Shown here: in pieces, positions 15,237 to 63,468 of the stretch
Position numbering within the stretch: the stretch's first letter is position 1
Layout: each line of letters begins with the position of its first letter
Assembly: GCA_047495785.1 (NCBI GenBank)
Contig: JBLDXI010000024.1
Coordinates: 930,001 to 994,000, forward strand
DNA length: 64,000 bases
From: Lepidodermella squamata
Lineage: Eukaryota > Animalia > Gastrotricha
Reading direction: 5' to 3'
Translations under genes and position numbers: made by a program
The notes under the pieces: generated by a model
The model's input: only the letters and a program-made list of their open reading frames with translations
Databases searched by the model: none
What the model was told of the DNA's origin: nothing

Positions 15237-17370
15237 ATTTCAGCTATGAATGAAAGTCTACATGGCAAAGTGATGGATTAGTTTTAAAGCAAATCGATCA
15301 TACAATACACCCTGGTTAGATGCCGCTTGGTTAAATAAGTACTGGTTATTCTAGCGTCATGGCTATCAGAGACCAGAAAAAAAGATATACAGCGGAGCGG
15401 CATCAGATCGGTTTGGACGAGTGCCAATCATACTAGCGGAGTAAAAATATCGAAGGCTTTGATTATGTTACGAATAATCAACAAGCAACCAAGCATTCAA
15501 ACACTAAATGAAGCCTCATTAGCATCGTTATCACAAACACCACGGAGAGTGGTCGCTATCGTGTGATTTGTTGAGCATTTCAAAAATAACTAAATGCATT
15601 TTGATAGAAGAACATAACTTTAAACGCTCTCATGATCGAGGGCTGATCGTCAGAATTGCTGGGTCCTTTAAAAGTTGCAGTACAGCAAAATCTCTGAAGA
15701 AATTTGGGGTGGATAGCTAACTATTCGCTTCAGATGTACTTGTAAAAGACCAAACTTATTTTGAGCATTGAATAAGCTCGTTGGCGGCCGGGCACTAACG
15801 ACCTTAAACGAGGACCCCTGCAAACCGACCTCCCGACCGCCTTCCTTTCATCCTGAAAATATATTTTCTCCCCGAGACGGCTGACATCTCAGCTGAGAAA
15901 AACAGATTACGGACAAATATCTCATCTCACATCTAGGCGGGGAAACATCGGCCGGAAAGAGCGAAAGAACAGATAGCGCGCGACTTGCCCTTTGAGCGCT
16001 AACGAACCTGCATTTTTCAGGTTTTTCAGGGCCGGCACATCCCTGGTAAAATAATGAGCAAGGGTATCGATTTCTAACTCATTTTTCTCAATTACGATCT
16101 CGGTGATCTGGGCATGTAAGTTTTTGTGTATCTGACAGATGAAGGGGGATGTCGATTTTTATGGATAAAGCGGCGAACAAGCGAATATCGTTAACTAGCG
16201 ACGTAGGACAAAGATCCAACGTAAATTCAGAGGGATTCGAAATGCATCTTTAGGCGGTGACAATGAAAATTAATGTCACGCCGCGTCGCTGACATGGCCA
16301 GTGTGACATGGTCGAACAAAACCGCAAGTCAAGAAACCGATTTACCAGCCTGCAAAGTACCAGTTTCGTTCAAAACAAACCGGCTGAAAATACCGCACAT
16401 GGTAAAAGAGGGTTAACAAAGATGAATGTGAATCGAGAGATGAGAGATGAATGGGAAGTTCGAAACCGCAAGAAAAGAGCGTCAGAGCGTTATCCTGTGA
16501 TTGTTTGCGCGCCAGTTGCCATTGACGACGCATTTTAATTCATTTTGGTAATTATTGTTATCAAAATTTATAAAAATGTATTATGTATATTTTTAATTTC
16601 TTTGAGTGAAGGTTGCTTTTATTCACGTGATCTGGTCAAGTTTATCGTTTTTTGCTCCAAGTTTTTGTCGCGACCCTTTGAACTCAAAGCGTTTTCCAAA
16701 TACTAAAAATAAACAAACTAAAAAACTGAATCATTTGCGCAGACCAAGTGCGTAGTGTGTCGTCATCCCGTCTGATCACATGATTATTTTGTCTGCGGTC
16801 ATTTAGTCGATTTGATGCTACCATGCCAAAGCCTCATTATTATTGTTTGACTTCCTATGACACTAGCTTTTTAAACAATCGTTAATAACATGACTCATTA
16901 TTCTCACTTTGGACTTTGCTCTCTTAATAAAGCGTTTGACTCTTTTGTTTGTATTTGTATTTCTCGGTTTTGTGTTCTTTCATGATGCGGAGATTCCGTT
17001 CCTTATGCCTTATGCAAATCATCATTCCCATATCCCATCTTCGATTGTGTAATTAATGTAACCAACAATGGACACCATTGAGTTCGCATTTTTGCGCTAT
17101 TCTGACATATCTTATCTATATTGATTTGTTATCTGTTCCCTGTTACTGTCCGTATTAACTTTTATTCCATGAGTGCATGACTAGGTCACTCAAAAGGTAG
17201 TCGATTAAGGTCATTTGAGCGAGATTGGTCTCTCTATCGGCGGGTGTGGATAGTTCCTATATGACTGCCGTTTCTTCAGAAACGTACTTGAGCTTTACTT
17301 TGAGTTCACTTGTAGTGCATATTTGTCTTTGCACTTTTCTTAGAGTAGTTTATAACCTTGGCTTATATGC

Positions 17371-18437
17371 ATGGGACACGATCACAAACGTGGACACCAG
17401 CGGCATCAAAAGCGCAAATGGGAGGTTTGTTGCAGCATTTTACTTTTTTTAGTTTATGAGTGACAACATTATTCGTAGGTTGTCAGCCATAGCTCACTAC
17501 CAGAATGGTTGAGGCGTAAAGCAAACGAGTTTCTTGTGAATGGACATCGTCCTGAGTTGAGTTCTTTCTCTGAGTGTTACAAATCAATTTTCTCGATCCA
17601 CTCGGAGACGGGGAATATATGGACTCATCTTATTGGTATTCTTAATATTACTTGAGTAATGTATGACTTGACGGCTACTTAATTCTTATTGGCAGGATGT
17701 TGGCTATTCATGTTCATAACGGCTTCGATAATTCTTAACCCTTCAGAAGCTCTTGCTCGAGAAGTAAAACTTTATGATCAGGTTGTATTCACCATTTATG
17801 GAATCGGCGCTGTATTGTGCCTGTCATTTTCTACCTTGTTTCACACATTCGCATGTCACTCGGAAAAAGTTGGAACCTTTTTTCAAAAGCTTGACTATTG
17901 CGGAATTGCAGTCATGATCATCGCATCGTTCATACCATGGCTATACTATACATTTCTGTGTCAGTTTTGGCCGAAAGTGTTATACATGGGAATTTGTGGT
18001 GTTCTTGGTCTTGGTTGCATATTCATATCACTACTTGATCGGTTCACTCCGTCTCACTACCGCGGCTTTCGTGCCAGTGAGTTTGCGTTCCACTCTCTTG
18101 ATTTCTAAGAGTTTATTTGTTCTCTTCCGCAGCGTTGTTCGTGGCTTTCGGTCTCTCTGGCGTGTTACCAGCATTACACTACGTGGTGACTGAGGGATTT
18201 TACAATGCTTTCTACGTCGCCGGTCTCCACTGGTTGATACTTATGGCATTTCTCTACATCCTGGGTGCCGTCATCTACGCACAACGATTTCCTGAGCGCT
18301 TCTGGCCGGGAAAGTTTGACTACTGGGGACAGAGTCATCAAATATTCCACATTCTTGTTATCGCCGCCGCCCTTGCTCACTATCACGGAGTTAAGATTGT
18401 ATCAGCAAACATGGCATCGACCACATCTTGTGCATGA
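17371..18437 (+). CDS. ADIPOR: Adiponectin receptor/PAQR class I, copy 1 (short N-terminus, 3 introns)
   Basis: ETGNIWTH, STLFH, KLDYCGI, PERFWPGKFDYWGQSHQIFH; seven TM segments. Confidence 0.9.
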
Positions 18438-18695
18438 CATTAGATATTTCAAATCTTAGATAAGATGACTGGTGCTTGTTCCCTGGTTATTGCTACTACT
18501 TTTTACAGGTGTGTAATTATTTTTACGTTGCGCCATCCGAAGAGTGTCAGCGTTTTACCTCTTCAACGATCCCCGAGTTTGCTGGTTTGCCCTAGCGTGT
18601 AATAGGCTAACGAAATTGCTTTCATCACTCAACAATATGTTTTATTTTTTATTAATATTTACGCCTTGTTGAATTATAGACTTTTATTGACTTTG

Positions 18696-19727
18696 ATGGG
18701 GCACAAACATCTAATTCAGCGCAAATGGGCGGTATGTTCAGCTGTATTTGATCTTTATTGGCTTTACATGAGGTTTTAAGTTGGTAAGCCACAGTGCTCT
18801 GCCATCTTGGCTTAGACACAAGGTCAACGAGTACATCCTTCATGGACATCGCCCCGAACTTCGTTCGTTTTCCGAGTGTGGTAAATCTATTTTCATGATA
18901 CACTCGGAAACCGGCAATATCTGGACTCATTTACTTGGTGAGTTTTGTTTGAATTTGTTTTTCGATTTTTTCTAACAGGTTGTAACAGGTTGTGCCCTTT
19001 TTGTGATGATAACTGCCGCGCTCATTCTCGACCCTGCGGACGTTCTTTCGCGACAAGTCAAGCTCAGCGATCAAACCGTTTTTGTGATTTATGGTCTCGG
19101 TGTCGTTTGTTGTTTGATGTTCTCGACCCTCTTCCACACGCTATGCTGCCATTCCGAAAAAGTCGAAAATTTCTTCCATCGACTCGATTACTGTGGAATT
19201 GCAGTGCTCATTATGGCTTCGTTCGTCCCCTGGCTTTATTACACCTTTTACTGTCAATGGTGGCCTAAAGTCATCTACATGACCGTTTGCATCGTGCTCG
19301 GAGTTGGTTGTATTTGCGTTTCGCTTATTGAACAATTTTCAACGTCTCAGTATCGCAGCTTTAGAGCAAGTAAGCTCCACCTTAATTTGCTAGAAAGAGA
19401 TTATTAAATTTGTCATTTTAAGGTATGTTCGTTGCCTTTGGCCTTTCTGGCGTTCTGCCAGCTCTGCACTACGTTATCGCCGAGGGTTGGCACAAGGCCA
19501 TTCACGTTGTTGCGATTCATTGGCTGATTCTGATGGCGTTCCTCTACATTTTCGGCGCATTCATCTACGCCAAGCGTATTCCGGAGCGTTTTTCGCCCGG
19601 AACTTTCGATCGATGGGGCCAGAGCCACCAAATCTTCCACATTCTCGTTGTTGCAGCCGCCCTTTCTCACTACCATGGCGTGAAAATCGTTTCGGCTAAC
19701 ATGGCTGCGATGGGTTCATGCCCATGA
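18696..19727 (+). CDS. ADIPOR: Adiponectin receptor/PAQR, copy 2 (short N-terminus, 3 introns)
   Basis: Same motifs and intron positions as copy 1. Confidence 0.9.
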
Positions 19728-20155
19728 AGTGACAACTGTTGTGATGTGAAGAGAAAAGATCGAAGATGAACTTATACCAATGGGTGTAAATTTAGGCGCG
19801 CGATATTTAAGGAGGATTTCTCGCTAAAATAATATTTTTTCAAAATGATGTTCGCACCTGGTGCAATATCTACCTCGAATTCTGATCTTAATTTAGATTG
19901 ACTTCCTTTTTTTGAGTATTCAAGAAAAAGCTCTCAATTTGAAATTAATGTTGCTTTCGTAATGAAGGAAATTTGATAATTTGCATAATTTCGCAGAATA
20001 TTTTCACAAATTGGAAATTTATATACCTCGTGCCATTGATATTTACCTATTGATACTGGTGTAATCTCTAAACTGCTAACAAATCTTCCCTATATATATA
20101 TAAAGTCTTCTATCGAATCGATTATATATATTGCCTATTTTTTTTTATAGATTTG

Positions 20156-21328
20156 ATGTCATTAACTAAAACAGATTTTATCAAAGCGATGTTGAGGAAC
20201 GGCGATGGCGAGAAGCCGTTCGCTGGCAAATTGGTGGATGACAATGAATTCGCGCCACATCTGGTTTGTCGCCGTCGATCTTCAGTGTCGACGCCGAAAC
20301 GACGTTTCAACATCGATCTCGACCCGACATCAGAATCCGACGGCGAGCTGGAAAAATTCACGCGAAACTCGCCATCATTTGCCCGAAAGACGTTCGAGCG
20401 ATTCAACCGCCGCGCTCACAAGGCCATGGACCAGGCTCAGGAAGCTTTCGAGCAGGTCGAAGACTACATCATGCACGTCTGGGACGTCGTCAGTCATCAC
20501 TCATTGCCGGACTGGTTGAAAGATAATGAATTTCTAGTATCGGGCCACCGACCTCAGTTGAACTCGTATGGCGAGTGTTTCAAATCGATTTTCCGGGTCC
20601 ACACCGAAACGGGCAACATTTGGACTCATTTGATCGGCTGTATCGCTTTCATCATAGTAACTGCTTACGTTTTGTTAGAACCTTCATCACCCGAGCTGCA
20701 GCCGGATGATAAGCTGGTATTCACGATTTATGGCATCGGTGCGATTCTATGCATGGGCTTTTCATGGCTCTTCCACACGTTGTATTGCCACTCGGAACCA
20801 GTGGGTAGACTGTTTAGCAAACTCGATTACTGCGGCATTTCAATCATGGTTATGGCCTCATTCGTCCCATGGGTCTACTACAGTTTCTATTGCGAAACTA
20901 CTCATAAAGTCGTGTATATGTCGATGACGATGCTGCTCGGCGTCGCTTGCATTTACGTTTCCCTGAAGGATAAGTTCTCAGAGGTTGCCTTCCGGCCGGT
21001 TCGGGCCGCGGTTTTCGTAGCATTTGGCAGTTCTGGCGTGATACCAACTGCTCATTTCGTGGCGAATCACGGCCTGCATCGCGCATTTGAAGACTCGCCC
21101 GTCGGCTGGCTGCTTCTCATGGCCGCGTTTTACCTATGCGGAGCGTTGATTTACGCCTACCGTGTGCCTGAACGCTTTTGGCCTGGAAAATTCGACTACT
21201 GGGGACAGTCGCATCAGATCTTCCATGTATTCGTCGTTGCGGCGGCTTTTGTTAATTACCATGCAATGAACCTGCTGAACAAAAACCTTGCTTCCATTAG
21301 CGAATGTGCCCTATCCGCAACCATATAG
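20156..21328 (+). CDS. ADIPOR: Adiponectin receptor/PAQR, copy 3 (intronless)
   Basis: Single ORF with LPDWLKDNEFL, ETGNIWTH, SWLFH, KLDY and HQIFH. The ATG at 20156 follows an acceptor-like TTTTATAG. Confidence 0.93.
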   Translation: MSLTKTDFIKAMLRNGDGEKPFAGKLVDDNEFAPHLVCRRRSSVSTPKRRFNIDLDPTSESDGELEKFTRNSPSFARKTFERFNRRAHKAMDQAQEAFEQVEDYIMHVWDVVSHHSLPDWLKDNEFLVSGHRPQLNSYGECFKSIFRVHTETGNIWTHLIGCIAFIIVTAYVLLEPSSPELQPDDKLVFTIYGIGAILCMGFSWLFHTLYCHSEPVGRLFSKLDYCGISIMVMASFVPWVYYSFYCETTHKVVYMSMTMLLGVACIYVSLKDKFSEVAFRPVRAAVFVAFGSSGVIPTAHFVANHGLHRAFEDSPVGWLLLMAAFYLCGALIYAYRVPERFWPGKFDYWGQSHQIFHVFVVAAAFVNYHAMNLLNKNLASISECALSATI

Positions 21329-21823
21329 AGATTTTGGTTGAAAACCACTTTAAACAAAACAAAAAAACTGACTTTTTCAATCACCGCTGCAAATTTAAGA
21401 TGTAAACACTCATTTCAAATTAAGGCTGATACGTGAGTGTTCAATCTGAACCTTCCCATCTGATTTTGCAGTAAATTTTGCTCCTTCGTGCCATCAGCTG
21501 CTGAAATAACTTGTTGCTCTAGATTATATTCTATAGTTTTAAAGAGATATTATTATTATGCAAAATAGTCGATTATTTTATTTTTTTGTTGACATGACAA
21601 CGGCTCCGTTTTTCAAAGCTTACATGTGTTATATGTGTTGTTGTAGGTTTACGTGCAACTGAATGACATTTATTATTAATATTTTTTTCTTTGATCGATT
21701 CATAATAAAAGAAGAAGAAGAAAAGCTGATCCCACATATTCTCCGGTGTATTCACCTCAAACATAAAAATCGAAAATATTTTAATTCGAATGTCTTATTG
21801 TAATTTTTTAGTGTTTTTATAAT

Positions 21824-23005
21824 ATGAATTCTGATCCTGGAGGGTTTGAGACAACTATGGATGCTAAAAATATGGACCATGAAGCTGAATATCGGCTGTC
21901 CGACAATGAACAACAACAACAACAACAAGGCGAGTCGAATGGAAGACTCAAGCATCGTAAGCCGTCGGCGACGAATGCGGCCGAGTGCGGCGCCGGTACA
22001 GAATGCGAATTCACGGGGTTCGCGAAAATGAAAGAACATATGCCACTATCTGCTCAGAAGGCGGTGGAAGAAATCGAGGACTTTGTCCACGGCATGTGGG
22101 ACATTGTCAGCCATCACTCGTTGCCAGACTGGCTCAAAGACAATGACTTCCTAGTCTCTGGCCACCGGCCGCAGCTTAACTCGTACTGGGCGTGCTTCAA
22201 GTCGATTTTCCGCATTCACACGGAGACCGGCAATATTTGGACGCATCTGCTCGGCTGCGTTCTATTCGTTTGCTTCGCCATCTACGGCCTGCTAAACCCG
22301 ACTATTGAAATGCAGTTCTACGACCATATGGTGTTTTTCATCTACTTCACCGGCGCCGTGTTGTGCCTCAGCTTCTCGTGGCTTTTCCACACATTCTGCT
22401 GCCACTCGCCATCGGTGGGGCGGCTATTCTCGAAGCTCGATTATTGCGGAATCTCGGCGATGGTCATGGCCTCTGTCATCCCATGGATCTACTACTGTTT
22501 CTATTGCGATCTGATGGCCAAGACCATCTACATTTCCGGTTGCCTTATTCTCGGTTCAACTTGCATCGCTGTCTCGCTAATTGACCGTTTCGCCGATGCG
22601 GCTTATCGTTCTGTTAGAGCAGGTGAAAAAAATCAATAATTTCTGAAAAAAATCCGCCTTAATAATTTTTTTCCAGGTTTATTTATTGCTTTTGGTTTGT
22701 GTGGCGCCGTCCCAGCTATTCACTACGCTTACAATCATGGATTTTATCGTGCCATCCATCACGGCTCGTTAGGCTGGCTGAGCTTGATGGCATTTTTGTA
22801 CATCGCCGGTGCCGTGATTTACGCCCTTCGCTTCCCCGAACGCCTTTGGCCTGGAAAATTCGACTACTGGGGCCAGTCGCATCAGATTTTCCACATTTGC
22901 GTCGTTCTAGCCGCGCTCATCCACTGCTACGGCGTCGCTAATGTTGCCAAGCATAACGTGCGACCTGATGCCTGCCTGCCGACCGCCACTGAGGCAGCTT
23001 CCTGA
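21824..23005 (+). CDS. ADIPOR: Adiponectin receptor/PAQR, copy 4 (1 intron, 22623-22677)
   Basis: Two exons carrying all PAQR motifs. Confidence 0.92.
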
Positions 23006-24072
23006 AACAAAACAGAACAGATAAAAATGATTTAAGAATGACTTTCGGTGTCTCACAGTGAACTTTTTATTTACAATGTTCGAAATCGATGAAAAAATAC
23101 GAAAATACCTATCGCGTGAAATCTTTGCTTGTAGCCGCGTTATTTTCATTCAAAGTGGCTTAAACAGGTAGCATACAAAAAAGAACAAAAATCGCACGCA
23201 CGTTTTACAACAAAATTATCCACCAGCCAACCATTTCTTTATATGTTGTCCGATGAGTGTGTTTTGCCTTGCGAGCTTTCCTTACGTGACCGTTTCAACT
23301 CGACGAATAAGATCTAGGCGTAGAATTACGATTAAGATCGGTATAGAATTCGTGTAGTTGAAACTGTATACAAAAAGCACAAATACTACTAGATGTCTAT
23401 CAGTCGGAGAAATAGGTGACGACGATCATGATGAAAGAATTACTGCTTAAGATTTACCTTCTCAAAATGAAATCGGGCGAAATTGCTTCTCTTTTGCTAA
23501 TAAACTTCTGAAATTATTCGAAAAAAAATACATATGATGCATCGTGTTGTGTTCGTTCATTTATTCTTGAGAAAAATTACGTTTAATTTAAAAAATCGTG
23601 GTCGAATCAACTTTTTCGATTGAACCCTGTTATATATCACGTATGTTATTATTATGATTATTACCCTGTTGATTTTGTTGATTGTCTTACAGTAAAAAAT
23701 ATCACTATTTTCTTTCGAATGCGAGTTATCGCACCCTAATTATTGATTCGCGGATCAGCTATACAAGAAAGGAAGATTCCATGATGATATGATACTTACA
23801 CACATTCATTCGTTCGTGGTGTTTTTGTGTCGAGTGTACGTGTGTTGCGTCAATTTTCAAGATTCATTTAGTTTTACTTTTACTACTACCAGGTTTACTG
23901 TATCATAAATTTGGATGGAAGGATGAATGAATGAATGAATATAATTGGTCAATCACTTTTGCGCGAGCCATTTCCTATAGTTTTTCTAGTATGTATTATG
24001 TTGTCGAACATATAAAAATATGTGTCTTGCAATTGTGTTTTTTTCTAATTTTTTAGTAATTTTAAAAAAATT

Positions 24073-25915
24073 ATGAAAGGCGACACTGCTCAGGATCCTG
24101 AGCAGAATGGCGGCGGAGATGGTTCAATTGCTTCAACGCCATCTACCCAGGCCACAAAACTGACTTCAACGAATTCCAATTTTTTCAACCCGAGTTCGCT
24201 AGGCGATGACATTTCGCCTGTTGAAGAAACTAATGTGGATGAGGTGAAGAAGCCGTTTTTGCGGAAAGTTCGCTTCTCCCACGAAATGTCTAGTCACAGA
24301 GCGGCGATGAGCGAATCAGATTCCGAGGCAGTCACGCCCAGCTCGGAAAGACCTGTATCAGGCATGGCCGGTTGTATGCCTGGCATGGTTGAAAAAGCCA
24401 TCGAAAGGGCTCATCGAGCCGTTGAACACGTTGAAGAATTCGTCTACGCCGTTTGGGGCGTTGTTGGCCACCATTCGCTACCGGAATGGCTGAAAGACAA
24501 CGACTTCTTGCTGTCTGGCCATAGGCCCCAGCTTAACTCCTACTGGGCGTGCTTCAAATCGATCTTTCGCATTCACACTGAAACCGGCAATATTTGGACT
24601 CATTTACTAGGTATTTTACGGAAATTTATTGAACAGAATATCTTCAAGCTGAACCAAAATTGAATAATTGGCAGAATTTAAGCGTTATTTATTTAAATTT
24701 CTGATAATTATTTAATTATTTAATTTGAATTAATTTTATTAAAATTTGGAAAATTTTTGGGCATAAAAGATCCAAATTTTGGTTCAGCTCATGGTAAAAA
24801 ATTTCAATGTCGGGCTAGATTTGATTTTTTTTAATTTTAGTTATTCTGATGAATAAGAAAAAATCTGAAATTAATCTAGAATTTGGCTGTTCTCATTATT
24901 TTTATCTTCACTGCCGTTGGAGGGTATTAGTTGAAAAATTACCAAATTTGGAATTTAAAATGACAATTTTTTCGTTTTATTTGAAAAAGCAAAATGCGAA
25001 ATTTATTAAGGAGGAATTTTTCAATTTTATTTAATTTTATATCAATTTTTTTTAAATTTAGGTTGCATCGCTTTCATTGGAATCGCTATTTATCTCGTCG
25101 TTAATCCTGCCCTGGAAATGCAGGCTCGAGACCGCTTAGTCTTCATTATATACTGCATCGGCGCTATTTTATGCCTCGGCTTTTCATGGCTTTTCCACAC
25201 TCTATATTGCCACTCGGAACCGGTCGGTAAACTGTTCAGCAAACTCGACTATTGCGGCATATCAGTCATGGTCATGGGTTCATTCGTACCCTGGCTTTAC
25301 TACTGTTTCTATTGCCAACTAGCGACGAAGTTGATCTACCTCAGCATTTGCATCGCCTTCGGCATCGCTTGTATAGTCGTGTCGCTGTGGGACCGCTTCA
25401 GCGACGCGTCTTTCCGCCCCGTGCGAGCAGGTTCGTTCTCATCTTATACCTACTCTAATTTTGTTTACTATATATTAGCTATATTGCGTTTTAATTAAAA
25501 ATGCAGCGCTTTTCATTGCGTTCGGCCTATCCGGTGTAGTCCCAGCTGTTCACTACGTGATAACAGACGGCTTCTACCGCGCCATCTACGTCGTCGGCAT
25601 GGGCTGGCTCGTTCTCATGGCGCTGTTGTACATTGGCGGCGCGGTTATTTACGCGCTGCGCGTGCCCGAACGCATCTGGCCCGGCAAGTTCGACATTTGG
25701 GTACGCGACCTTTTTAACCCCGTCGCGAATATTTCATATAAAACGTGACTTTTTTGTTCGTTCAGGGTCAATCGCATCAGATTTTCCACGTTTTCGTCAT
25801 CGCAGCTGCGTTCGTGCATTTTCACGGCATCACCATCGTCGCGTCTAACATGCTTCGATACGGCGACTGCCTCGATCAAACAGCCCACCTGAGCGCAATC
25901 GCACCTGCAGCTTGA
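24073..25915 (+). CDS. ADIPOR: Adiponectin receptor/PAQR, copy 5 (3 introns)
   Basis: Exons 24073-24611, 25062-25430, 25508-25700 and 25767-25915; all PAQR motifs present. Confidence 0.92.
24647..24790. repeat. 15-bp inverted repeat in an enlarged AT-rich intron (possible MITE remnant)
   Basis: AGCTGAACCAAAATT ... AATTTTGGTTCAGCT inside a 450-nt intron, where introns are otherwise about 50 nt. Confidence 0.4.
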
Positions 25916-51580: not shown

Positions 51581-53163
51581 AATTAACATCAGAAACAGCG
51601 TGACACCTGACACTAATGACTTCAATTCAAAGTCATGGTTTGGGGTTTGGGGTTTGGGCTTCAACATTTTCATCATCGGAATCAGAGGGTAGGAGCAGGG
51701 CCAGGGTATGATAAGATAGGTGATTTATTGCCAGGTTGAGGTGATTCAACTGCACTGTTTGCCTTAGCCTGAAGTTTAATGCCACATGCTTAACGCAAAG
51801 TCATCATAAAGTGACAATGCTAAACTATTTTGGAAGCATCACAAAGACGCAGCGATCTATACACATCCTCGTTCGACAACAGGAGAAATGAGCATGGAAC
51901 CAGTTTCGCGGCGGGAAACATCAACAGTAGCCATTAACCGAAACGAATTCAACGGAAACATCTAGGTGGCCAAAAGAATCAATAATTGCTGATGCGTGGC
52001 ACCATGGTCGGCGCCAACAGCAGGAATCCAGTCTGGAAACGATCACAACGATTTAGCAACCTTGCGTAGCGAGGAGCGGCGAATAGTTGAGACCGCGGGG
52101 CGCCTTGCCGCATGATGAATGAACGATTTCGATGTCAAGTATAATTGTTGTATTTTTTATTCCAAATTAATTACTAATACATCAAATAATAATTTTTCAA
52201 TTATTCTAGGACAAAAACAAGTTTGATTATTGCAGCATGCTATTAAGCCACTTTTTTGTGGTTGTGGTTTCCTCAGCATTGCCAATGTCTAAGGTCTAAG
52301 GTCACAACCTTAGGTCACAAGAATCGTCCAACAGTAAACGAATGTCAGAGGTCAAAGCTTTGATTACAAATCAAAAGCACACGACCAACCTCTTGACAGA
52401 TGTCATTATCCTGGGTGAAAAATGTAAAGACAAAGTTCAATTTTCCATGTTCACCTTGGCCCAAAAGACCACCGCAGAAAACCTTCGGATTACTAGGAAA
52501 TAATAACTGCACTGATCCTACAATATGCGGTGGATAAAAGTAGAACAAATAAGCCTCAAGATCAATGATCAGCGGCACAATGAATTATCCAAAATAAAGA
52601 TTGTCAATGAGAACAGCGATCAGCTTTGTCATTAACTTGATAATAAGCGCCTACATGAAGTTATTCTTCTTTTTGCTTATTGAATATCGAACAATGCGCG
52701 AATGGATGTTGCGCCTGAAGTTTCAAATTTCATGTCAATTCATATAAACTGTCAACCTTGGACATGGTCAATGAGAGAACAAATCAGATAAATCCAGTTG
52801 AACTAATCGAATCTGGAAAATGAAAGATTCGCCAATAAGTTCCTTATATTGTGTACCTATAGGTAGTACTGTTGTGTTTAAATGATAGGAAATGCTCTTG
52901 CTGGCTTCAGGTTATTAAACAAATTCATGCGTTTTCTATAAAAGTTGGTTATAATATCGTGTCATTCCTGTCATTAGATTCCTCTTTGGCTGCAGTCTTG
53001 ACGGCCGACCTTTAATCGACGTACAGCCGCTTAACTGCATCTTTATAATTTATTTATTTGTTCCCTTCTCGCGCCAAAATGTTCAACTTCCAAAACAAAT
53101 TTTTTAGCATTGCGCCGAATTTATTTCACCAATTAACAATTGAGCATTAAAATCGATTCACAT

Positions 53164-53496
53164 TCACTTTTTGCCCACTTGAGCTCGTCGACCTTGTCCT
53201 TTGGTAGGCTTAACTCGACCTCGAAGACGCCTGAGACGGTCCATTTCTTCCTTGAAGTCAAGATGCTCATCGCGATACAAGCCAAACTGCCGCATCAGAA
53301 AAAACAAACGAGAAATATTAGGATGATCGGGATAATAATTGACGATGTTCGGTTTGTAGCAAGGTGCCGGTTGAGCATAACGATCCACAATACCCATGCT
53401 ATTTGCCGACGTGGGCCGCACGACCTCGCCGAAAATTCTTCCAGCTAAACGAGTCATGCGACGTCCATAAATAGAACCAACGCTTGCAGCACTCAT
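53164..53496 (-). CDS. MRPS33: Mitochondrial ribosomal protein S33
   Basis: RMTRLAGRIFGEVVRPT..YYP.H..LMRQFGLYRDEHLDFKEEMDRLRRLRG. Confidence 0.95.
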   Translation of the reverse strand: MSAASVGSIYGRRMTRLAGRIFGEVVRPTSANSMGIVDRYAQPAPCYKPNIVNYYPDHPNISRLFFLMRQFGLYRDEHLDFKEEMDRLRRLRGRVKPTKGQGRRAQVGKK

Positions 53497-53607
53497 TTCA
53501 AATATTGAGAAACATACACTATAAACAACACAGAAACGTTATACAAAACCAAACTTTATCGTCATATATGATAAGAAGATTGATGATTAGCAAAATCGAA
53601 TGACTAG

Positions 53608-54669
53608 CTAGCTATTCATGAAAGCAGCAATTGACCGCTGCGAGCAGCAAAGAGCAGCATCAATAGGTTTGAGAGTATCAGCAAAAGTTCCGAACAAAGA
53701 AAGACCAGCCAAGGTCAAATAAGCGTGAAGAGGATCGGCGGGACAACCGGGCAGCTTCCCGAAGCCTCCAATAACGCGATCTTCAACAGAACGATAAAAT
53801 CCGATAACCGATCTAGGGTCAATGAAATGAATGGCATCTAATATTTTCAAAGACGCTCCAACCCAGAAAAAGTAGCAAGAGTCTGACGGCTTATTCGGCC
53901 GCCCATTGAATCCACCATCAACATTCTGGCGCCGGAGTAGCCATTTGATAAGCGCAGTCTTCTTCTCAGGACTCAAAACTGTGTCTAGTTGATCGGTTAA
54001 CTTCAATGCAGCCAAACTGCAATAAACTGCGCCTGCATGGCCTTCCAGCTCGGGTTTCACGGTAATCGCTTCATCATACGTGAAGCAAGAATTAATGAAT
54101 AAAGATAATTTATCGAAATCAAATGCTTTCTTTGCAAAAGATGTCCCGCGCTTCTGGTCTACCATTTTTAAGACAGCAAAAATGCAAGCTGCGGAATAAG
54201 CGAATCGAACGTCGTATTCATCGTTCGGGAGCAAAGTTGGCTGGAAACAGCCGTTAGTTAGCTGGAACTTGGAAAGACCTTCTGACAACTTTTCCAACTC
54301 TAAATGCGAGTCATCGTCGATTTTCTCGCCGAGAATAATCAGAGATAACAATACGGCCGAAGTCATGGTAAGATGAGAAGTGTCCATGTCGTGATTTTCG
54401 AAGCCAACAGCCTCGCTGTGCCTAAAGGTAGATCCTCCTCGGAAGCCGAAATCATCGTTATGCTTTTGAAGATGCTTCAACCAAGCAATCAATTGCGGCT
54501 TAATTTTCTCGATGCGACCCAGCTCGTTCAAAACGTCGAGACCACACAAGCAGAAAAACGCGATGAGAGGCCGCTGCATGTCTTGGCTTTTCGCGGGGAT
54601 GCCGTTGAGAACCATTTGGAAATATCGGGCATGCCTATGAACATCAACGACGTCGTCCAACCCGGTCAT
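53608..54669 (-). CDS. PGGT1B: Geranylgeranyltransferase type I beta subunit (intronless)
   Basis: HARYF, AFFCLCGLDVL, GFRG, YDVRFAYSA, EGHAG, GFNGRPNKPSDSCYFFW, DPLHAYL. The first ATG is at 54669. Confidence 0.9.
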   Translation of the reverse strand: MTGLDDVVDVHRHARYFQMVLNGIPAKSQDMQRPLIAFFCLCGLDVLNELGRIEKIKPQLIAWLKHLQKHNDDFGFRGGSTFRHSEAVGFENHDMDTSHLTMTSAVLLSLIILGEKIDDDSHLELEKLSEGLSKFQLTNGCFQPTLLPNDEYDVRFAYSAACIFAVLKMVDQKRGTSFAKKAFDFDKLSLFINSCFTYDEAITVKPELEGHAGAVYCSLAALKLTDQLDTVLSPEKKTALIKWLLRRQNVDGGFNGRPNKPSDSCYFFWVGASLKILDAIHFIDPRSVIGFYRSVEDRVIGGFGKLPGCPADPLHAYLTLAGLSLFGTFADTLKPIDAALCCSQRSIAAFMNS

Positions 54670-55198
54670 TTCAGTATTTAATAACAACTAAAAACATGAC
54701 AGTAAAATAATCGATTTATTCAGTTTACATAGGGCTTAAGTGTCAAAATAATAATCATTTCCGTGTTATTACAGGTGTCATTGTAAGATAACAATTTTCT
54801 GATTTCACAGGGAATTCTTCCAAGCGGCCGCCTTAAAAATATCGGCGATAGTGATTGCAAGAGAACACAGACACACAACCTGACTAAATCAGGACAGATA
54901 GAAAGAGCGATAACGTATCCGTTGTCAACGATAATTTCATAACAAAGATCAGAATGTGTTTGGCAAAGCAAAAAGCAAAGAATTGCATTACGCAGTGTAC
55001 AAAGTTACCGGTTGACTTTTTTTCGTTCACAAATAAATGCAGTGAAAAGGCAGCGAATATTCTAAGATTCTGCTGTTATGTGGGTAACATCAATATTTTC
55101 ATCAAATAATCATGTTTTCAAAAATATATATGACATTTTCGGTTTTTATAGGCCGAAGAGTGTTTTTGTTAGCCAATGTTCCACCGGTAATGATTCGA

Positions 55199-57247
55199 TT
55201 ACAAACGAGCATTATTCGGTTGTTGCCAGCGATATGTTCCAGAGTACTTGAAACCAACCTTTGAACATAATTCGTCACTTTCTTTAGGACCGCGACTGAA
55301 AATAATTGAGCATATTATTTGACTTGAGCACGATTATCTAAAAACTCACCCTCCATATTGGTAAGGAAGTGGTTTAATTTTTTCGCTTTCAATTTTGTGA
55401 AGAAGTGGGGTGAAAATTCTCCAGGCTTCAGCCAATTCATCAGTTCTCACGAAGTTTATTTGACTGCCGCCCAAAACTTCAAGCAGCAAACGCTCGTAAG
55501 CATCCGGGAATTTGACCTCGCTGTAACGCGACGAATAGGTCAGATCGAGTTCAGTCTCCTCGAAACTGAAACCCATGCCGGGCTTCTTTGTCATCATCTT
55601 GAGGTAGACTGCTTCGTTGGGCTGCACGCGAAGCACGAGTTCGTTGCGCTGGATCGGATTGATGCTGTCGAAAATTGACGCGGCCACATCCTTGAATTGG
55701 ATGCGAAGCTCGGCTTTACGCTCATTCAACGCCTTGCCACACTTCATGATAAAAGGAACCCCATGCCATCTCTCATTGTCAACACTAAGAAAAATTCGTA
55801 AATTTAAAGAAATAATTAGTCCACCTTAACTAACTAAAGAACAGCTGTGGCAAAGGTGGGCGTAACGGAATCTTTCGGTACAGTTGAGTCGTCCAGGTAG
55901 CCGTGTTTTGAGTCGTCAGTCTTGCCATCAGGATCGGCAGTGTATTGTCCAAGAACGCAATTGCTCGTCTCAATCGGACACCATCTCGTGAGAGTCCTTT
56001 GACTTTTCGTCGCGGATATCCTCGGCGCCGACTGAGCTTGGTCGTTCCATGGCAGCCAAACATAGAATCTGCATCAAATGGTTTTGCATGACGTCGCGAA
56101 TAATACCGAACTGGTCGAAATATCCACCACGACCCATGGTTCCGAAGGGCTCTTTGAAGGTGATTACAACCGCTGAAATGTAGTGACGATTCCAGATCGG
56201 GCTGAACAAAACGTTGGCGAAACGCAGAACCAACAAATTCTGAACCATTTCCTTGCCCAAGTAGTGATCGATACGGTAGATTTGCTGTTCGTTAAACAGG
56301 CCAGCCAAGTGGCGCGACAACTTTTCCGACGAAGCCAGGTCATGGCCGAACGGCTTTCGACAACCACGCGAGTCCAACCCTGGCCTTTCGCCATGCAATT
56401 CTCGCGAATATTAGCCGAAACAGGTTCGTAACACGTTGGGAGGCAGGGCCATGTAGAACAAGCGGTTGACTGGTGACCCGTTGGCGCACAGTTTTTCGAT
56501 GTGTCATCGAGCTTCTTGAAGGTAACTACCGTCATCGTAAACGCCCTTGACATACGAGTTGATCGAGAAAAATCGCTCGAATTTTTCCATTTCTTTCGGG
56601 TTCTTCTATCCAGCTTAATTGAAAATAGCAACAAAAATTAGGGTAAATAAAGCAGTGCGTTTTCGAAATTGCATGCCAAAGTTAAAAACATTGACTTGAT
56701 ACAAAAAATGTTGGGAAGCGTTAAGTTTTCACGAGTACTTAATGCTAGCAAATTTTCTGTCTACTACAAAATTACAACGAAAAAACATATAAAAGTGCGA
56801 CATATATCTCTCACCTCGTTCTACAAAATTAAATTTCAAATTTTCAGTAGAGTTGCAAAAATAAAAAATCTGAAAAAATGAAAACTGCTTAAAAACGGGT
56901 ACAAACCTTCATGAATGGCTCGCAGCTTTCACGGATTTTCGCAATGGTCAGGTCGCTTCGGGCGAAACCAATGATGTGAGTCTTTTCGGGTAGAAGACCG
57001 TCGCGATACAAGCACCACAAAACTGGGTAGATTTTCTTCTTCGCAAGGTCGCCCTACAAAATCATCGCATTTAAAAGGAAATTTCATCAGATTTAGAAAG
57101 AAATACCGAGGCGCCCATGAGGATGAACGCGACAGTTTGAGTGAAGGAGTCCGGTTGTTCGGACTTGATGATTTGCAGCACATCTTTCTCTTCCAGCTGC
57201 ACGGTGCCTTCACGCTTGAGACCAGAAGCCAAGTGTTCCTCAGCCAT
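55199..57247 (-). CDS. G6PD: Glucose-6-phosphate 1-dehydrogenase; exon 3 is frameshifted in this assembly
   Basis: [42 protein letters not shown] and DAYERL are present. Several single-base indels lie between about 55975 and 56530. Confidence 0.9.
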
Positions 57248-57479
57248 TACAAATGATTGCCAAAAAATAAGATCACTAATGACAATAAAAAACACAATCA
57301 ATTCTCCAAATCCAACGAAGGGTAGCGCTATGAAGTAGCCCTGAGTAGTGAGGCGCAAAGTTAGTTTGGCTTTATTCACCGATATTTTTGTATAAATTGT
57401 GCGACGACGTCTGTTACGTAAACAATGATTAAAGAGGCGCTGCTGAGAAATAATAAGAGCCTCACCGGAAAGTGAACAA

Positions 57480-60400
57480 TCAATCATCATCATCTGAAAT
57501 TTCAATAACAACTGGTTCGGTTGAACGCGGAGCCGGAGTCAGCATTGGCGGGGCTTGATACATTGAACGAGGGACTGGAGCTCTTACCATCGGCGGGATG
57601 GCTGATGGCATTGGTATGAGAGGCGGCATTACTGGAGGAGGCGGGCCCCTCGGAATCGATTGGGATGGCAAGGGAAGTAGCGGTAATAAATTTGAAAAAC
57701 CGGGCGGGGCTGGTAATTGATAGGACGGCAGGCTGCTTCTTGGCGTTGACGAAAACGAAGGAGCAGGAGGTAAGCTGTAGAGGGGTAGCGACGGTAGAGA
57801 TGGCTCTATAGTAGAGCTTATTGATGGCTTCGGTGAAATCGGAGACGGCGCGCGAGGCAACGATGAAGGTGAACTAAGAGCCGGTGTAGATTGAATAGCA
57901 GGCCCGCCTGACAACATATTAGACAGAAGAGACGAATTCTGCCGCTGTTGTTGTTGTATTTGCAGCTGCTGCAGCTCGGCAAGTGATTGACTTTGAAAAC
58001 TAGAGGAAGTAGTAGTGCTCGTTTTTGTGGCAGTTGTGCCTTCAGCTGTTATCAGCGATGAAAGCAACCTGGTCGAAAAAAATCGAAAAATTTCCCAACA
58101 ACATGAGCAGTTGTCTCACTTACCCTTCAGTTGTCAAACGAGGTGGGGGAGGAGGGTGAGGTTTAGCCGCCGGTTGTCTTGGGGCTTGCTTAGATGCGTC
58201 ATCGTCATCCGATTCTCCTCCAGAACCGCCCTTTTTTCGCTTTTTGCCGCGGTTGTTCTTCGCAAAAGTGGGAAGCACAACCTGCTCGTACTCGATTTTA
58301 TCAGTTTCGTACTGCAGCAATGCTCTCCGCCGTTCCAGCTCAGTTAACCGCGTCGCAGGGTCAATCTCTCGAAAAGTGTCATGCCGTTGAGGTGGCTGTA
58401 ATTGGGAAGATAATACTAGCCTATTTGAATCACTTTTAATGAAATTTTACCCTTGCGAAATAAAACGACAGTTCTTTTATCACTGAATTCAGCACGTTAT
58501 CGACTACCGGGGCGTTGAAAGCAGCGATCAAACTTTCGGCTTGTTGCTTTGAATCAACAGGTGGTTTTGAAGGAACAACTTGCTCCTCTGGAAATTGCCG
58601 ATAAATGTTCTATAATTTAGGCATTGTTGCATTTTTCCTTTGAAAATTTGAAAATAACTACCTTAATGTCATCTCTTGTAAATCGTCGATTCACCGGAGA
58701 ATCGTCCACAACCCTAGTTGAAAGAGCTTCTTTCTGCACTTGTCTATCGTAGACGACCCGCTCGAGCGAGCAATCACTGACCAGCCGATACACAAAACAC
58801 GGCTTCAGCTGCCCAAAACGGTACACCCTTGCAAGGGCTTGAACATCTTGGCACGGGTTCCAACTCGCGTCCATCAGACACACCCGGTTGGCACCGGTCA
58901 AATTAATACCAAGCGAGCCTGCTCGGGTTGAAATAAGAAAAAGAACGGCTTGGTTGCTCAGACTAGACACTTTTTCATCAGAATTTTGCACTTCATTTTC
59001 AACTTTGACTTTCGGAGTTTTCCCCTGTTGAAAGCGGTTGACTAGCAATTCTCGGCTCGACCCGGGTGTCGATCCGTCGAATCGATAGTAGTCGACATTG
59101 GCCCGCCAGTAGTTATCAGCGCTCGGCGTTTCATCAATTGAACTCGGCAGAATCGCGTGTGGCTTGACTGACTTTTGCAAAATTTTCTCAATCATGTCAA
59201 GTGTAGCGATGTTTTGGCTGAAAACCAGCATGCGATCGCCGGCAAGCACCGCGTATTTAATCAGGCATAGCAGCACGCGAAATTTCGGGCTATCCTCCGG
59301 GTTGCACTTGGGCGTGTAATTCTCGAGCAGCGGAAGTGCCTGTGTGAATTGACAGATAATGATGAAGCAAGTAGAAGTAGAAAATGAGCCGGCAGATAAT
59401 GAATTAAAGCGCGCAGTGACCACGAGTCATGACGCGAAATCGATCGAACGTGCGATTGATTCAATTACGCGACGTCTCTGTAACACTGAATTCAGCGGCA
59501 GATAACGAACAATCAATCAGTACACTGTTTCTGTGGTAAGAAATGGATACTAAATGTAATATAGCCCAGTATAAGATCATCAACTTGACGTCGACAGCTA
59601 TACATGAGGGGCCGAGGGAATCCTAGATGTAGCAGTAGTCGTAGTACTTGGGGCGATACATTCTCATTTAACTACATTTTCCCTCAGGACGCATTACATC
59701 GTTCTTTGCTAAGATAGTTTTTGCGCGCTCTTACTGTATTTTCATATACCAATTTTTAAACATGATAAAAGCTCGAAAATGGTACTTGGCGTGACTGGCT
59801 CCTTCTTTAGAGCAACATTTTATAGAATGATTGATAGCATTTTAACCTCTCTACTATTCGCGATGGTTATCAACTTTTTCCTTCAAAATCCAACATTAAA
59901 CCTAGTAGAAGCTAACAATAACAAAGGTAAGGTTGCCTTCGCTTTGTGATTCCTAAATAAGTTATGTTTTTCCAGCAACCGGAAGTCCAGGTAACTGGGT
60001 AGAAGAATTCTGTCAAGAGTGCTCGACGTTTGGAGACGCTTGCATATTTCACGCCCCAACGAGACGCTGTTTTGCATTTGAAAGGCACCAACCGATGACG
60101 TGGCATCACGCTAACGACTGGTGCTTAAACGAAAATTTCACGGGTCTTGCTCGTTTAGTAACAAGGGACGCAGATTTAGCAGTCAGAACTTTCTTAGAGC
60201 GTATGTTTTTTCTGATTTATAAATCGAAACTAATCAATCTATGCAGGAAGGAATTGGCACTATGGCAATAGCTTTGCATACTGGATAGGTGGTGAATTCG
60301 AGCGGCGATTCGAGAATTGGCAATGGATAGGCTCAGATGGGTACCCAATGAATTACGTTAATTGGGAGATCAGATTGCCGGGCTACAAATCTCAGCCTGA

Positions 60401-62585
60401 CAATCCGTCTCTAGACAGTTGTGTTGATTTAGAGCTACGATACGTTGAAGGTAAAACGCTTCACTACGGTTGGTATGACACTAGATGCGACCACATGCAA
60501 TTTTTTATTTGTGAGCTTGTTACAAGCTAGAATTTTACTCAATTTTGTAAGATATTGCCTGCTAAACAGTACAAATAAATCAAAATTTACCCATCTCATA
60601 TCGTACTCGTTTTCATCTGATTTCTTTTCATCCTGATAACCAGCTCGCTTAGCAACCGCTAGCCAATTAGACCATTCGGAGCTTCTCATGTTTTGCTCAT
60701 TTTCCAAATCGATAGGCTGAGATTTAGGGGCAGAGCTCGTACTTGGCCCTCCGTTATTTTGAGATTTTTTGCGATTCTTCTTCGAGTTTTTCGAGTCGTC
60801 TACGAAGTCCTCTTCGCCCGACCAGATTTCATCGTCATCCACACCGTCACCAGCAACTTCCGCACGACCCCTAACAAACCGATAAAAAACGTCCGGGTGG
60901 TTTGAAATCTAAAATTTCAAACATTTATTATCATTTCAAGCCACTGTCGCTCCTAAACCTGCCTTCATTGCCATGGCGAAAGCTCGAAATAAGTTCCTAG
61001 TAAACAAGCCACCTGTCATTGAGCACCTAGCAACGCACATATTGTACGCTCGAGCTTGGAAATCGGTCATTTTCAACGACAAAATGTATTCATATTTTGG
61101 AGGTAGATGTTGATAGAGCAGTAACGCGGGTCGTCGGTGGACGAATCCTTTGAGCAAGGAATGTAAAATGTGACTCCGATCTCGCATCTGCTGAACTTCG
61201 ACTGGAACGCTGTCCGCGGCCGAGCCTCGTAAAATAGGCGAGACGAATAGGTCTTTGAATTGAACGAGCGGGCCGAGATGCCCTGGTCGAATGAAATCAA
61301 CCATATACCAATATTCCATCAAATTATTCTGCACCGGGTAGCCGGTCAAAACTAAACGCCGTCTAGTGCGAATTTTACGCATCAATTGCACAACCTCGGC
61401 GTTTTCCGACTTTAAACGATGTCCTTCATCACAGACGACTATATCGGGTCCGGGTTTGAATAAAGAAGTAATAAGTGTTTCGAATTCCCGTTTCCTCTCC
61501 GCTCCGAGGGCTTTCTTCTCCTCGGCACTCTCCTTGTTCTTTTGGCGAAGGTGAAGATATCCGCCACTCGCTTCCTTTTTCGCAGTGGCTTTCAACCTTT
61601 TTTGAGCGTTTTTCCATATGCTGAGAAGCATTTCATAACCGATAAGCAAGACGCCGCCGTTGCTTTTCCAATTAGCTGTAAGCAGGCGTTATCAATTATT
61701 TAATATTTAATAGGTTAGAAAATAATGCTGAAACTTACAAATTATGGCAAGTTTATCTTCAAAGGTTTTGCATTCATCGTCGATAAATGCCAGGCCAAAG
61801 GTGCGATATCTATCATCGACGTCAACTTCAACAACGCTGTTGACATCAGGTGTTGGGCTCTGTTGATGGCTGCCACTCTCATTATGAGACTTTTCAGGTA
61901 GCCACTTGTTGAATTCGGCAAACCACAATCTAATCGTATTTGCCGGTGTAACAATCAAGCACTTCTCGAGTTTGGTAGAACGGAATAAAGCTTCGAGAAA
62001 CGCTACGACTTGTAGGGTTTTCCCAAGACCCATCGAGTGAGCAAGAATACATCCAGCACCAGAAAGTCCAGCATTGAAATGAGGAATGCTACCAATCAGA
62101 TTGCTGTACATGAAACGCAGCCCACTAATCTGATGCGGCTTGAGCTGCTTGCCAATCTAAACAGGAGGTTCGAACATATTGAATCGTAACTCTCAAGTAT
62201 ATCTCACATGAAACGCAACAAATATATCATCTTCATTTTTTGCGTGTGTCGGATTCAACAAAACTCGCCCAAATGAATCCGGTTGATTACATTCGTCATT
62301 CTCAAGCAAGTTTGCGAGTGCAGAAATGGGCGAAGGCCTCGTATTGACAATTTCATCATCGCGAAGGGAAGATATATCAGCAACTGGATTGGATTCATCT
62401 GGTAAAAGAGAGGAGTCAATTTAAGCTATACATTCGAATCGCGTGGTGGAAAAATATTACTAATAATAATTAATTGTTCAATGTTAACAAGGTGTACAAT
62501 TTGCTATTTTCGAGTTCTCATAAGGCGTTAACTAAAAAGTACCTGCACTGCTTTCATCGTCGGAAATAACGATGCAATCGCCCAT
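57480..62585 (-). CDS. RAD54L2: Helicase ARIP4 (SNF2 family)
   Basis: GCILAHSMGLGKT, PGPDIVVCDEGHRLK, LTGYPVQNNLMEYW, ISNHPD, LISTRAGSLGINL, VYRFGQLKPCFVYRLV. SIM-like CIVISDDE and VIEISDDDD at the two termini. Confidence 0.9.
59827..60530 (+). CDS. Secreted C-type lectin nested in a RAD54L2 intron (exons 59827-59926, 59976-60200, 60247-60530)
   Basis: Signal peptide; CFAF..MTWHHANDWC..GLARL, YWIGG, WQW, YVNW, QPDN..C, WYDTRC..FICE. Exon phases are consistent. Confidence 0.88.
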
Positions 62586-62916
62586 AATTATTCATTTTTC
62601 ATCATAAATGATATTAAAATCTAGAAATCAAGTTCAAAAATTGCGTTAGCTGGTTGAACAAGCGAACTTATATTTCCAATGTTTAATGTTTACTCGTCTG
62701 TTTATAATTGAATTCAATATGGTACCTTGAAAAGAAAAGGTGTAGCCTCAATAGAGAGATCGGAGTTGCTAATAATCACGAAAAGGAAGTAGTATGATGC
62801 ATGTGATAGTACCAAGCATCTTTTAAACAATTCAATTTTTCGACTTCAAGATTAGGTAATCAAAATATAATATTACATGCGAACTCCCTGGAAACACTTA
62901 ACACCCGCTATATCTA

Positions 62917-62989
62917 AAATGTCAGAAGCTAGAAATCGAATGCGAATAAAATCATCCTAAGGTAGCCAAAACTTCTAATCATTCCATCC
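62917..62989 (-). ncRNA. Box C/D snoRNA antisense to 28S rRNA, in intron 63027-62914 of a non-coding leader
   Basis: The terminal stem GGAUG/CAUUU, box C AUGAUUA and box D CUGA give k-turn geometry. The guide UUUGGCUACCUUAG, just upstream of D' (AUGA), is complementary to the conserved 28S sequence UUAAGGUAGCCAAA. Confidence 0.72.
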
Positions 62990-63468
62990 GATAAAATTCC
63001 GTTCGAGAAAGCCCAGCTTCTTCTCACCCCAAACAGCAGCTCATTCGTCATTTGCTTCGTGCTCTCTGGATTAGCATTCCACCCCCTATCAGACGGTGAA
63101 CTAAAAGCCCTGAAGAAATAACAGGCGATGCCCTTCCAAGGGTAAGAAAGAATTGCGTGACAGAACTACATTCTCGAAGGCTCAACAACACGGCAAAATG
63201 AATAATATTGAATATGGAATTGTTGACCTACGGCTAAAACGGATGTAGAACAATCAATAAGACTTCTAAAGGCAGGCAAGCCAGGAGAGCAGGTGCGACT
63301 AACAGTCAGGAGGGATCAGTCAAGGCCATCAGCTGGGCGAAACTGATAACCAGGTCAAATCTCGTTTTCAAAATAGCTCATTATTTGAACTTCGCCAGAT
63401 TCATACTTTTTCGTGAAATATTATTTCTAAATTTAATTTGTCATTACTGACAAGTTTGAATAAATGCC

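Follow-up and report, generated by a model that had tools for sequence, protein, structure and literature searches.

Non-coding segments ahead of trans-spliced gene units at a locus of the gastrotrich Lepidodermella squamata, one with a probable snoRNA host intron

Introduction

Do the non-coding segments that precede several same-strand gene units in the gastrotrich Lepidodermella squamata form a system of stereotyped, spliced leaders that host small nucleolar RNAs (snoRNAs), or are they outrons, the 5' parts of transcripts that are exchanged for a spliced leader (SL)? The question is raised by a stretch of 64,000 nucleotides (nt) of GenBank assembly GCA_047495785.1 (contig JBLDXI010000024.1, positions 930,001 to 994,000 of the forward strand; hereafter the window, numbered from its first letter), in which a first-pass annotation, made from the sequence alone, had placed leaders of 0.75-0.9 kilobases (kb) at the heads of four housekeeping units and had proposed that they couple snoRNA output to operon transcription. 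The four segments, here called leaders, are:

15246-16050, minus strand: CEP41-like leader; predicted acceptor AG 15245-15244, ATG 15236; delimited by the lack of open reading frames (ORFs) and by composition only
37456-38365, minus strand: FAM120A-like leader; predicted acceptor AG 37455-37454, ATG 37438; 5' limit set by composition only
51339-52112, minus strand: RPL29 leader, upstream of the SL acceptor; 5' limit set by a sharp AT-to-GC step only
62623-63360, minus strand: RAD54L2-like leader; predicted acceptor AG 62622-62621, ATG 62585

We put the probability at roughly 0.6 that these segments are promoter-proximal non-coding DNA heading SL-trans-spliced units, that they act as outrons, and that the hosting of snoRNAs is specific to individual genes. 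The earlier proposal is partly supported: its core of trans-splicing and outrons is right and is demonstrated at one leader, the evidence for one of the proposed snoRNA host introns is good, and another such intron is possible. A general system of stereotyped leaders does not hold on present evidence.

A spliced leader and operons in RNA contigs

RNA evidence was taken from the contigs of three sequencing runs (X1, X2 and X3) over positions 50001-56000. Run X2, which covers that entire interval, is DNA; X1 contains a SMART complementary DNA (cDNA) oligonucleotide and X3 has poly(T) ends, and these two runs are therefore RNA. At RPL29, contigs of both X1 and X3 run from the poly(A) site (50927/50932) to 51338, confirming two introns (RNA-confirmed introns measure 50-62 nt), and at that point pass into non-genomic letters that read, as RNA, ...GCGATTGAATATTAAATTTTCTG. 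The 5' end of MRPS33, at 53520, carries the same non-genomic tag, and the loose ends at both positions contain ...GCGATTGAATATT...TTTTCTG. This tag is encoded neither in the window nor in any fetched locus, and a search of the literature found no match to it. The window contains no donor gene for the SL RNA. The two junctions are:

51337-51338, minus strand: RPL29 trans-splice acceptor AG, with an X3 loose end at 51338 and the ATG at 51306
53519-53520, minus strand: MRPS33 trans-splice acceptor AG, with an X3 loose end at 53520, inside operon-like cluster A

Because the tag itself seems to end in AG, the RPL29 junction is ambiguous by 2 nt. A common non-genomic 5' leader at the acceptors, which the first-pass annotation had named as the thing to look for, is present at the acceptor predicted for RPL29 (51338) and at MRPS33, and SL trans-splicing operates at both genes. 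The distance from poly(A) site to the ATG of the next gene is 49 nt for the site at 50927 and 34 nt for that at 54703, the latter being the site of G6PD ahead of the geranylgeranyltransferase beta gene (PGGT1B); MRPS33 has its poly(A) site at 53100, and a single X1 contig spans the PGGT1B-MRPS33 junction. The gene units are operons: with the same tag on the RNA of two genes, and poly(A) sites so close before the next ATG, both SL trans-splicing and operons are real at this locus.

Within the RPL29 leader, X1 contigs reach a depth of four up to about 51405 and persist as scraps of one to two between about 51600 and 51970, with none at 52001-53000. This pattern, which comprises very few contigs, fits a low-level outron precursor ending near the proposed 5' limit. 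Since the leader is missing from mature messenger RNA (mRNA), it is an outron or a promoter region and not a retained 5' untranslated region. The view of the leaders as outrons is thereby borne out for RPL29, where the SL sits at the predicted acceptor and mature mRNA lacks the leader; the extension of that view to a common, stereotyped leader system is not.

Two further features of these contigs were recorded. The tag differs between the two genes, reading ...GAATATTTTTTTTTCTG on RPL29 (two contigs, 85% agreement) and ...GAATATTAAATTTTCTG on MRPS33, and two SL variants may lie behind the difference. In addition, the PGGT1B cDNA contig of X1 has 23 unaligned letters upstream of 54671, with no AG before that point; these letters may stem from an allele, from the joining of contigs in assembly or from an SL at an unusual position. 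Inverted repeats, considered as a cause of the odd X1 joints, do not explain them.

A probable H/ACA host intron in the FAM120A-like leader

The strongest case for a snoRNA inside a leader comes from the FAM120A-like gene, which appears to hold two copies of one box H/ACA element, one in its leader and one in a coding intron:

37900-38079, minus strand: predicted leader intron of 180 nt, GAG/GTAAGT ... TTTCAG/G, a paralogue of coding intron 35684-35507
37915-38046, minus strand: putative H/ACA-type snoRNA, leader copy, comprising hairpin 1, H box AAAGUA, hairpin 2 and ACA at 37920-37918
35507-35684, minus strand: coding intron of the same gene, 178 nt, with the second putative H/ACA copy at about 35651-35512 (H box ACAUCA, ACA at 35517-35515)

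The two introns share 143 nt at 70.6% identity in a blastn search of the leaders against the window (E = 2e-14; nhmmer, E = 1.9e-37), and both are three times as long as the usual 50-62 nt. Judged by its sequence, the one at 35684-35507 is a real coding intron: it has GT and AG ends, its length divided by 3 leaves the remainder that keeps the exons on either side in frame, and both exons match a syntenic relative (described below). In both copies, 33 nt are followed by a hairpin that has an internal loop and is closed by GUCCC/GGGAC, an H box (ANANNA) at the same place, a second hairpin and, 3 nt from the predicted 3' end of the RNA, an ACA, which lies 8 nt from the intron end in the coding copy and 18 nt from it in the leader copy. 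Hairpin 1 folds more stably than shuffled sequences (z = -2.9 in the leader copy and -3.2 in the coding copy), and between the two sequences compared its upper stem differs in sequence and keeps its shape. Identities between the copies are clustered: three mismatch-free stretches of 15-16 nt fall on lower-stem and pocket strands (P<5e-5), which argues for selection on a guide RNA and against the decay of a dead copy.

Guide targets on ribosomal RNA (rRNA) were sought in 16 complete environmental ribosomal DNA (rDNA) loci. The pocket of hairpin 2 pairs over 11-12 base pairs (bp) with the conserved 18S sequence UCUUC-UU-AGAGGG, about 13-14 nt from the ACA (the rule being 14-16), a match equalled by 8% of shuffled pockets. 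This 18S sequence probably falls within a known cluster of modifications in human 18S.

Taken together, the FAM120A-like leader very probably holds a working snoRNA intron, and a leader that does so must be transcribed from upstream of 38079 and cis-spliced. Between the leader intron and the acceptor lie 444 nt with about 10 ATGs and no strong 5' splice site, and the leader is likely to be removed by trans-splicing.

A candidate box C/D element in the RAD54L2-like leader

The leader of the RAD54L2-like gene includes a second snoRNA candidate:

62914-63027, minus strand: candidate leader intron of 114 nt, GGG/GTGAGA ... TTTTAG/A
about 62989-62919, minus strand: box C/D-like element, with a C-like box at 62983-62976, antisense at 62970-62956, AUGA at 62955-62952 and CUGA at 62925-62922

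Its C-like box (AAUGAUUA) has one mismatch and is followed, 5 nt on, by a 15-nt antisense (one G-U pair) to a universally conserved part of 28S rRNA just 3' of helix 69; the resulting 15-bp duplex abuts the D'-like AUGA box, and the 28S site is present in 13 of the 16 rDNA loci. The CUGA lies 8 nt before the intron end, the same spacing as that of the ACA in the coding H/ACA intron. A search of 252 kb from this genome and the relative gave 41 box-adjacent rRNA duplexes, of which this is the best, and because it falls in a 114-nt segment that had been picked beforehand, a chance origin is unlikely (roughly 1 in 1000). We rate the odds that this element is a real C/D snoRNA as somewhat below even.

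Elsewhere in the same leader, an 11-nt antisense (one G-U pair) to conserved 28S GAUGGUGAACUA lies at 63102-63089 (minus strand), directly before a CUGA. As a guide, this antisense beside the CUGA at 63092 was rejected, there being no C box upstream and the register being off the methylation sites known there; it may be due to chance or be a decayed guide. A 5-codon upstream ORF (ATGATGAAAAATGAATAA) lies between the predicted acceptor and the ATG (62620-62586, minus strand), and would remain in a trans-spliced mRNA.

Leaders in which no snoRNA was found

In the RPL29 leader we found no strong 5' splice site, no snoRNA and no credible intron. Two C/D-like spots (ATGATGA...CTGA, at 51807-51682 and 51676-51589) were discarded, having no terminal stem, unremarkable folding (z = +0.7 and +0.8) and no rRNA antisense; one of them includes a CCCCAAA repeat. 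This repeat, present three times at 51630-51660 (minus strand), is polymorphic, one DNA contig of X2 being without 7 nt at 51637, and 51615-51858 is covered by two allelic contigs. In the CEP41-like leader, too, neither a snoRNA nor a credible intron nor a strong 5' splice site was found: the intron drawn there by the first-pass annotation (15930-15893), at 38 nt, is shorter than any confirmed intron (50-62 nt) and has no support.

Of three introns claimed for the leaders, then, that at 38079-37900 is strongly supported by its paralogy with a real intron, that at 63027-62914 is plausible, and the CEP41 intron is unsupported. The related claim that two introns hold snoRNAs is well supported for the H/ACA element, and for the C/D element the evidence is suggestive; neither element is in Rfam. 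Rfam snoRNA searches gave no match in any leader (the window at gathering score and at E<=10, two leaders also with lax filters), and no candidate in the leaders passed a C/D scan with strict settings (RUGAUGA, CUGA, terminal stem of 4 bp or more).

Length, composition and acceptors of the leaders

All four segments are, as first described, without open frames of more than about 80 codons, but their similar length reflects 5' ends that were picked by composition. The full ORF-free span is 1762 nt for RPL29 (from the MRPS33 poly(A) site to the RPL29 acceptor), about 2.2-2.3 kb each for CEP41 and FAM120A, both with a divergent gene opposite them on the plus strand, and 1.4 kb or more for RAD54L2. 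Because entire intergenic regions are ORF-free, the leader lengths of 0.74-0.91 kb rest solely on the 5' ends chosen by composition, and with ORF-free intergenic DNA continuing beyond the segments, a stereotyped length of 0.75-0.9 kb is unsupported.

The GC-richer 5' ends were confirmed in all four segments, the first 250 nt having a GC fraction of 0.44-0.52 versus 0.37-0.41 in the remainder. RPL29 shows a clear step in composition, from 20-23% GC at 52120-52200 to 56-57%; the steps of FAM120A and RAD54L2 are fair, and there is no clear one for CEP41, whose nearest deep AT trough is at 16520, as against a proposed 5' end of 16050. A reading of the GC-rich ends as CpG islands was set aside: the window has an observed/expected CpG ratio of 1.24, and its spots richest in CpG lie elsewhere. 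Each of the four segments also ends, as had been noted, at a pyrimidine-rich AG, with 13-14 pyrimidines in the preceding 20 nt and the AG 7-35 nt from the ATG. Motifs said to be shared between pairs of leaders proved to be at the level of chance: the common k-mers, 10-mers at most, match the expectation from shuffled sequences, no 11-mer is common to the leaders, and a sensitive blastn search detected no similarity between one leader and another.

Comparison with a syntenic relative

A relative with proteins 51-71% identical to those of the window was recovered from ENA metagenome contigs by single-exon searches, and 62 kb of it were examined. Three of its loci are syntenic with the window:

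L001: FAM120A-like gene, then copper monooxygenase
L005, 3180-11530: RAD54L2-like, G6PD, PGGT1B and MRPS33, in the same order as in the window (53100-62622, minus strand)
L114: RPL29, CFA20-domain gene, WD40 gene, others, phosphatase

Synteny ends just upstream of each head gene (FAM120A-like, RAD54L2-like and RPL29) and after MRPS33, breaks that fit transcription units being kept as blocks; the run of RAD54L2-like, G6PD, PGGT1B and MRPS33 is a conserved operon. Nucleotide homology between the two genomes starts at, or at most 5 nt from, the ATG, and for the FAM120A-like gene exactly at the ATG; for the three leaders that can be compared (FAM120A, RAD54L2 and RPL29), no leader sequence is conserved. 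The total space upstream in the relative is about 700 nt for RPL29, about 755 nt for RAD54L2 and 1616 nt for FAM120A, and the AT-to-GC step ahead of its RPL29 lies about 240 nt before the acceptor. With less upstream space and a step at that distance, a fixed leader of 0.8 kb is not a conserved trait. About 55 nt past this step, L114 has a consensus 5' splice site (G/GTGAGT, at 9241-9300, plus strand), and RPL29 of the relative might, on that sequence, have a short non-coding first exon that is cis-spliced to the same acceptor, in place of or beside the SL.

Probable outrons and alternative explanations

The reading that we favour would work as follows. In this animal of small introns, the four segments would be non-coding, promoter-proximal DNA before the first genes of SL-trans-spliced units, three of which appear as conserved blocks in the relative. 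Transcription would begin at some point upstream, and the stretch from there to the pyrimidine-rich AG would be the outron, swapped for the common spliced leader and then discarded, as the contigs show for RPL29 and as probably happens for CEP41, FAM120A and RAD54L2. Where snoRNAs occur in this genome, they would sit in enlarged introns: the FAM120A-like leader would contain an H/ACA intron that arose by duplication of a coding intron of the same gene, or gave rise to it, and the RAD54L2-like leader may host a C/D snoRNA likewise. Hosting would then be gene-specific and not common to all leaders, which would have no fixed length and no shared sequence.

Several points weigh against this reading. 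The RNA evidence consists of contigs, which cannot show start sites, and concerns one leader, that of RPL29; SL use at CEP41, FAM120A and RAD54L2 is deduced from sequence, and the splicing of the leader introns is a prediction. The 18S match of the H/ACA element is not significant by itself, given how many shuffled pockets do as well, and the element belongs to no family in Rfam and is absent from the 62 kb of the relative, where the matching intron is about 70 nt long. The C/D candidate has an imperfect C box, a terminal stem of 1-3 bp at best and unremarkable folding, and was missed by the strict C/D scan; it too is without an Rfam match or a copy in the 62 kb of the relative. We know of no yeast or human methylation at the nucleotide targeted by its register, and a search of the literature found no methylation at the predicted 28S site.

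Three other explanations were weighed against these data. On the model of the first-pass annotation, a stereotyped first cistron or outron, non-coding, spliced and about 0.8 kb long, would stand at every unit head and host snoRNAs, coupling their output to operon transcription genome-wide. It can draw on one, perhaps two, of the four leaders having snoRNA-type elements in GT-AG segments, on an AT trough followed by a rise in GC at 0.74-0.91 kb in three of the four, and on X1 scraps confined to the proposed RPL29 leader, with none in the 1 kb beyond. However, neither the RPL29 nor the CEP41 leader has a snoRNA, a credible intron or a strong 5' splice site, motifs are shared no more often than chance predicts, composition decided where the 5' ends were drawn, and the heads in the relative have shorter upstream spaces, an RPL29 step far closer to the acceptor and no conserved leader sequence. 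With no set length, no shared motifs, no snoRNA in two of the four leaders and no conservation, a stereotyped snoRNA-host system at every unit head is not upheld, and we consider the model quite unlikely; equally slight, in our estimate, is the chance that the discarded outrons of operon heads regularly host snoRNAs in this lineage, which would tie snoRNA supply to operon transcription at no cost to the mRNA.

A somewhat better, though still improbable, alternative is that the leaders, as intergenic or promoter DNA, go largely untranscribed, with start sites near the acceptors, and that the snoRNA-like elements are genes with their own promoters or decaying duplicates. The lack of any RNA contig of appreciable depth over the RPL29 leader and the lack of leader conservation in the relative would suit it, as would the existence of C. 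elegans snoRNAs with their own start sites. Yet the leader H/ACA copy keeps consensus splice sites and the same 33-nt spacing from 5' splice site to hairpin 1 as the coding copy, differences between the copies avoid the functional blocks, which speaks against decay and for processing from an intron, and X1 contigs reach at least 65 nt upstream of the RPL29 acceptor. Ranking between these two in likelihood, and poorly placed overall, is the idea of a short non-coding snoRNA host gene occupying the FAM120A-like leader, distinct from the coding gene downstream and with splicing and polyadenylation of its own. The roughly 444 nt between leader intron and acceptor would leave room for such an arrangement, but 37899-37456 contains neither an AATAAA-type signal nor a strong 5' splice site, and the other snoRNA copy belongs to the coding gene itself, in keeping with one transcript that hosts both.

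Genes and material

The window, animal DNA whose introns are very short, has a GC content of about 42% and contains no tRNA gene and no Rfam match at gathering score. Pfam searches outlined tight runs of same-strand genes on the minus strand:

ATG 15236, minus strand: rhodanese/CEP41-like gene (Pfam rhodanese)
ATG 37438, minus strand: 'FAM120A'-like gene, the name being that of the first-pass annotation
ATG 51306, minus strand: RPL29, heading a run with a CFA20-domain gene, a WD40 gene, others and, last, a tyrosine phosphatase (Pfam)
ATG 62585, minus strand: SNF2/RAD54L2-like gene, heading a run with G6PD, PGGT1B and, last, MRPS33

Pfam agrees with the calls of CEP41-like (rhodanese), RPL29 and SNF2/RAD54L2-like genes; neither Pfam nor Atlas gave a name to the gene labelled 'FAM120A'. 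Exons were searched singly, by reference, no joined spliced gene model being used. An exact-protein look-up for MRPS33 returned no match, nor did a search with the CFA20-domain exon at E<=1e-30, an over-strict cut-off.

On the plus strand, about five HlyIII/PAQR-type paralogues with similar first exons (blastn E down to 3e-24) stand in tandem at 17411-25000, head to head with the CEP41-like gene. The relative also has an HlyIII cluster near its FAM120A-like locus (L001, 16995-20861, minus strand).

Comparison with known systems

Outrons in C. elegans have a median length of 260 bp and a mean of 753 bp, with 21% exceeding 1 kb (PMC3687364), and the distance between initiation and the trans-splice site is not fixed there (PMC3730107). 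By that measure, long outrons at this locus are ordinary. As with SL1 and SL2 of that nematode, a common non-genomic leader is joined at a pyrimidine-rich AG some tens of nucleotides before the ATG, the RNA upstream is discarded, and same-strand genes are packed into operons with very short spacers and outrons of hundreds of nucleotides. The leader sequence is different, however, and spacers from poly(A) site to ATG are 34-49 nt here, compared with about 100 nt in operons of C. elegans. We found no published report of SL trans-splicing in this animal group, and the contigs provide direct RNA evidence for it, and for tightly packed operons, at this locus.

Non-coding 5' exons with intron-encoded snoRNAs are ordinary, and hosts of the GAS5/UHG type hold them in 5' non-coding introns or in non-coding host genes. 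The predicted H/ACA pair resembles these in its order of hairpin, H box, hairpin and ACA within a GT-AG intron, in having several copies per host, and in the non-coding exons that flank the leader copy. It departs from them in its very compact introns (ACA 8 or 18 nt from the end), in belonging to no Rfam family, and in that its host exons would be lost by trans-splicing and not by the decay of a spliced non-coding RNA. Box C/D snoRNAs of the U15/snR13 region guide 2'-O-methylation near helix 69 of 28S; the RAD54L2 candidate is similar in its intronic position, its 15-bp antisense 3' of helix 69 at a D'-like box and its CUGA downstream, and unlike them in its C-box mismatch, near-absent terminal stem, lack of an Rfam match and a register off the known sites. 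A literature search on outrons and snoRNAs showed, by title and abstract, no case of a snoRNA intron inside an outron. The H/ACA pair identified here appears to be lineage-specific. One of its two copies is intronic and precedes what is probably a trans-splice acceptor; if this proves true, an outron that contains a snoRNA host intron would be a small new twist on known elements.

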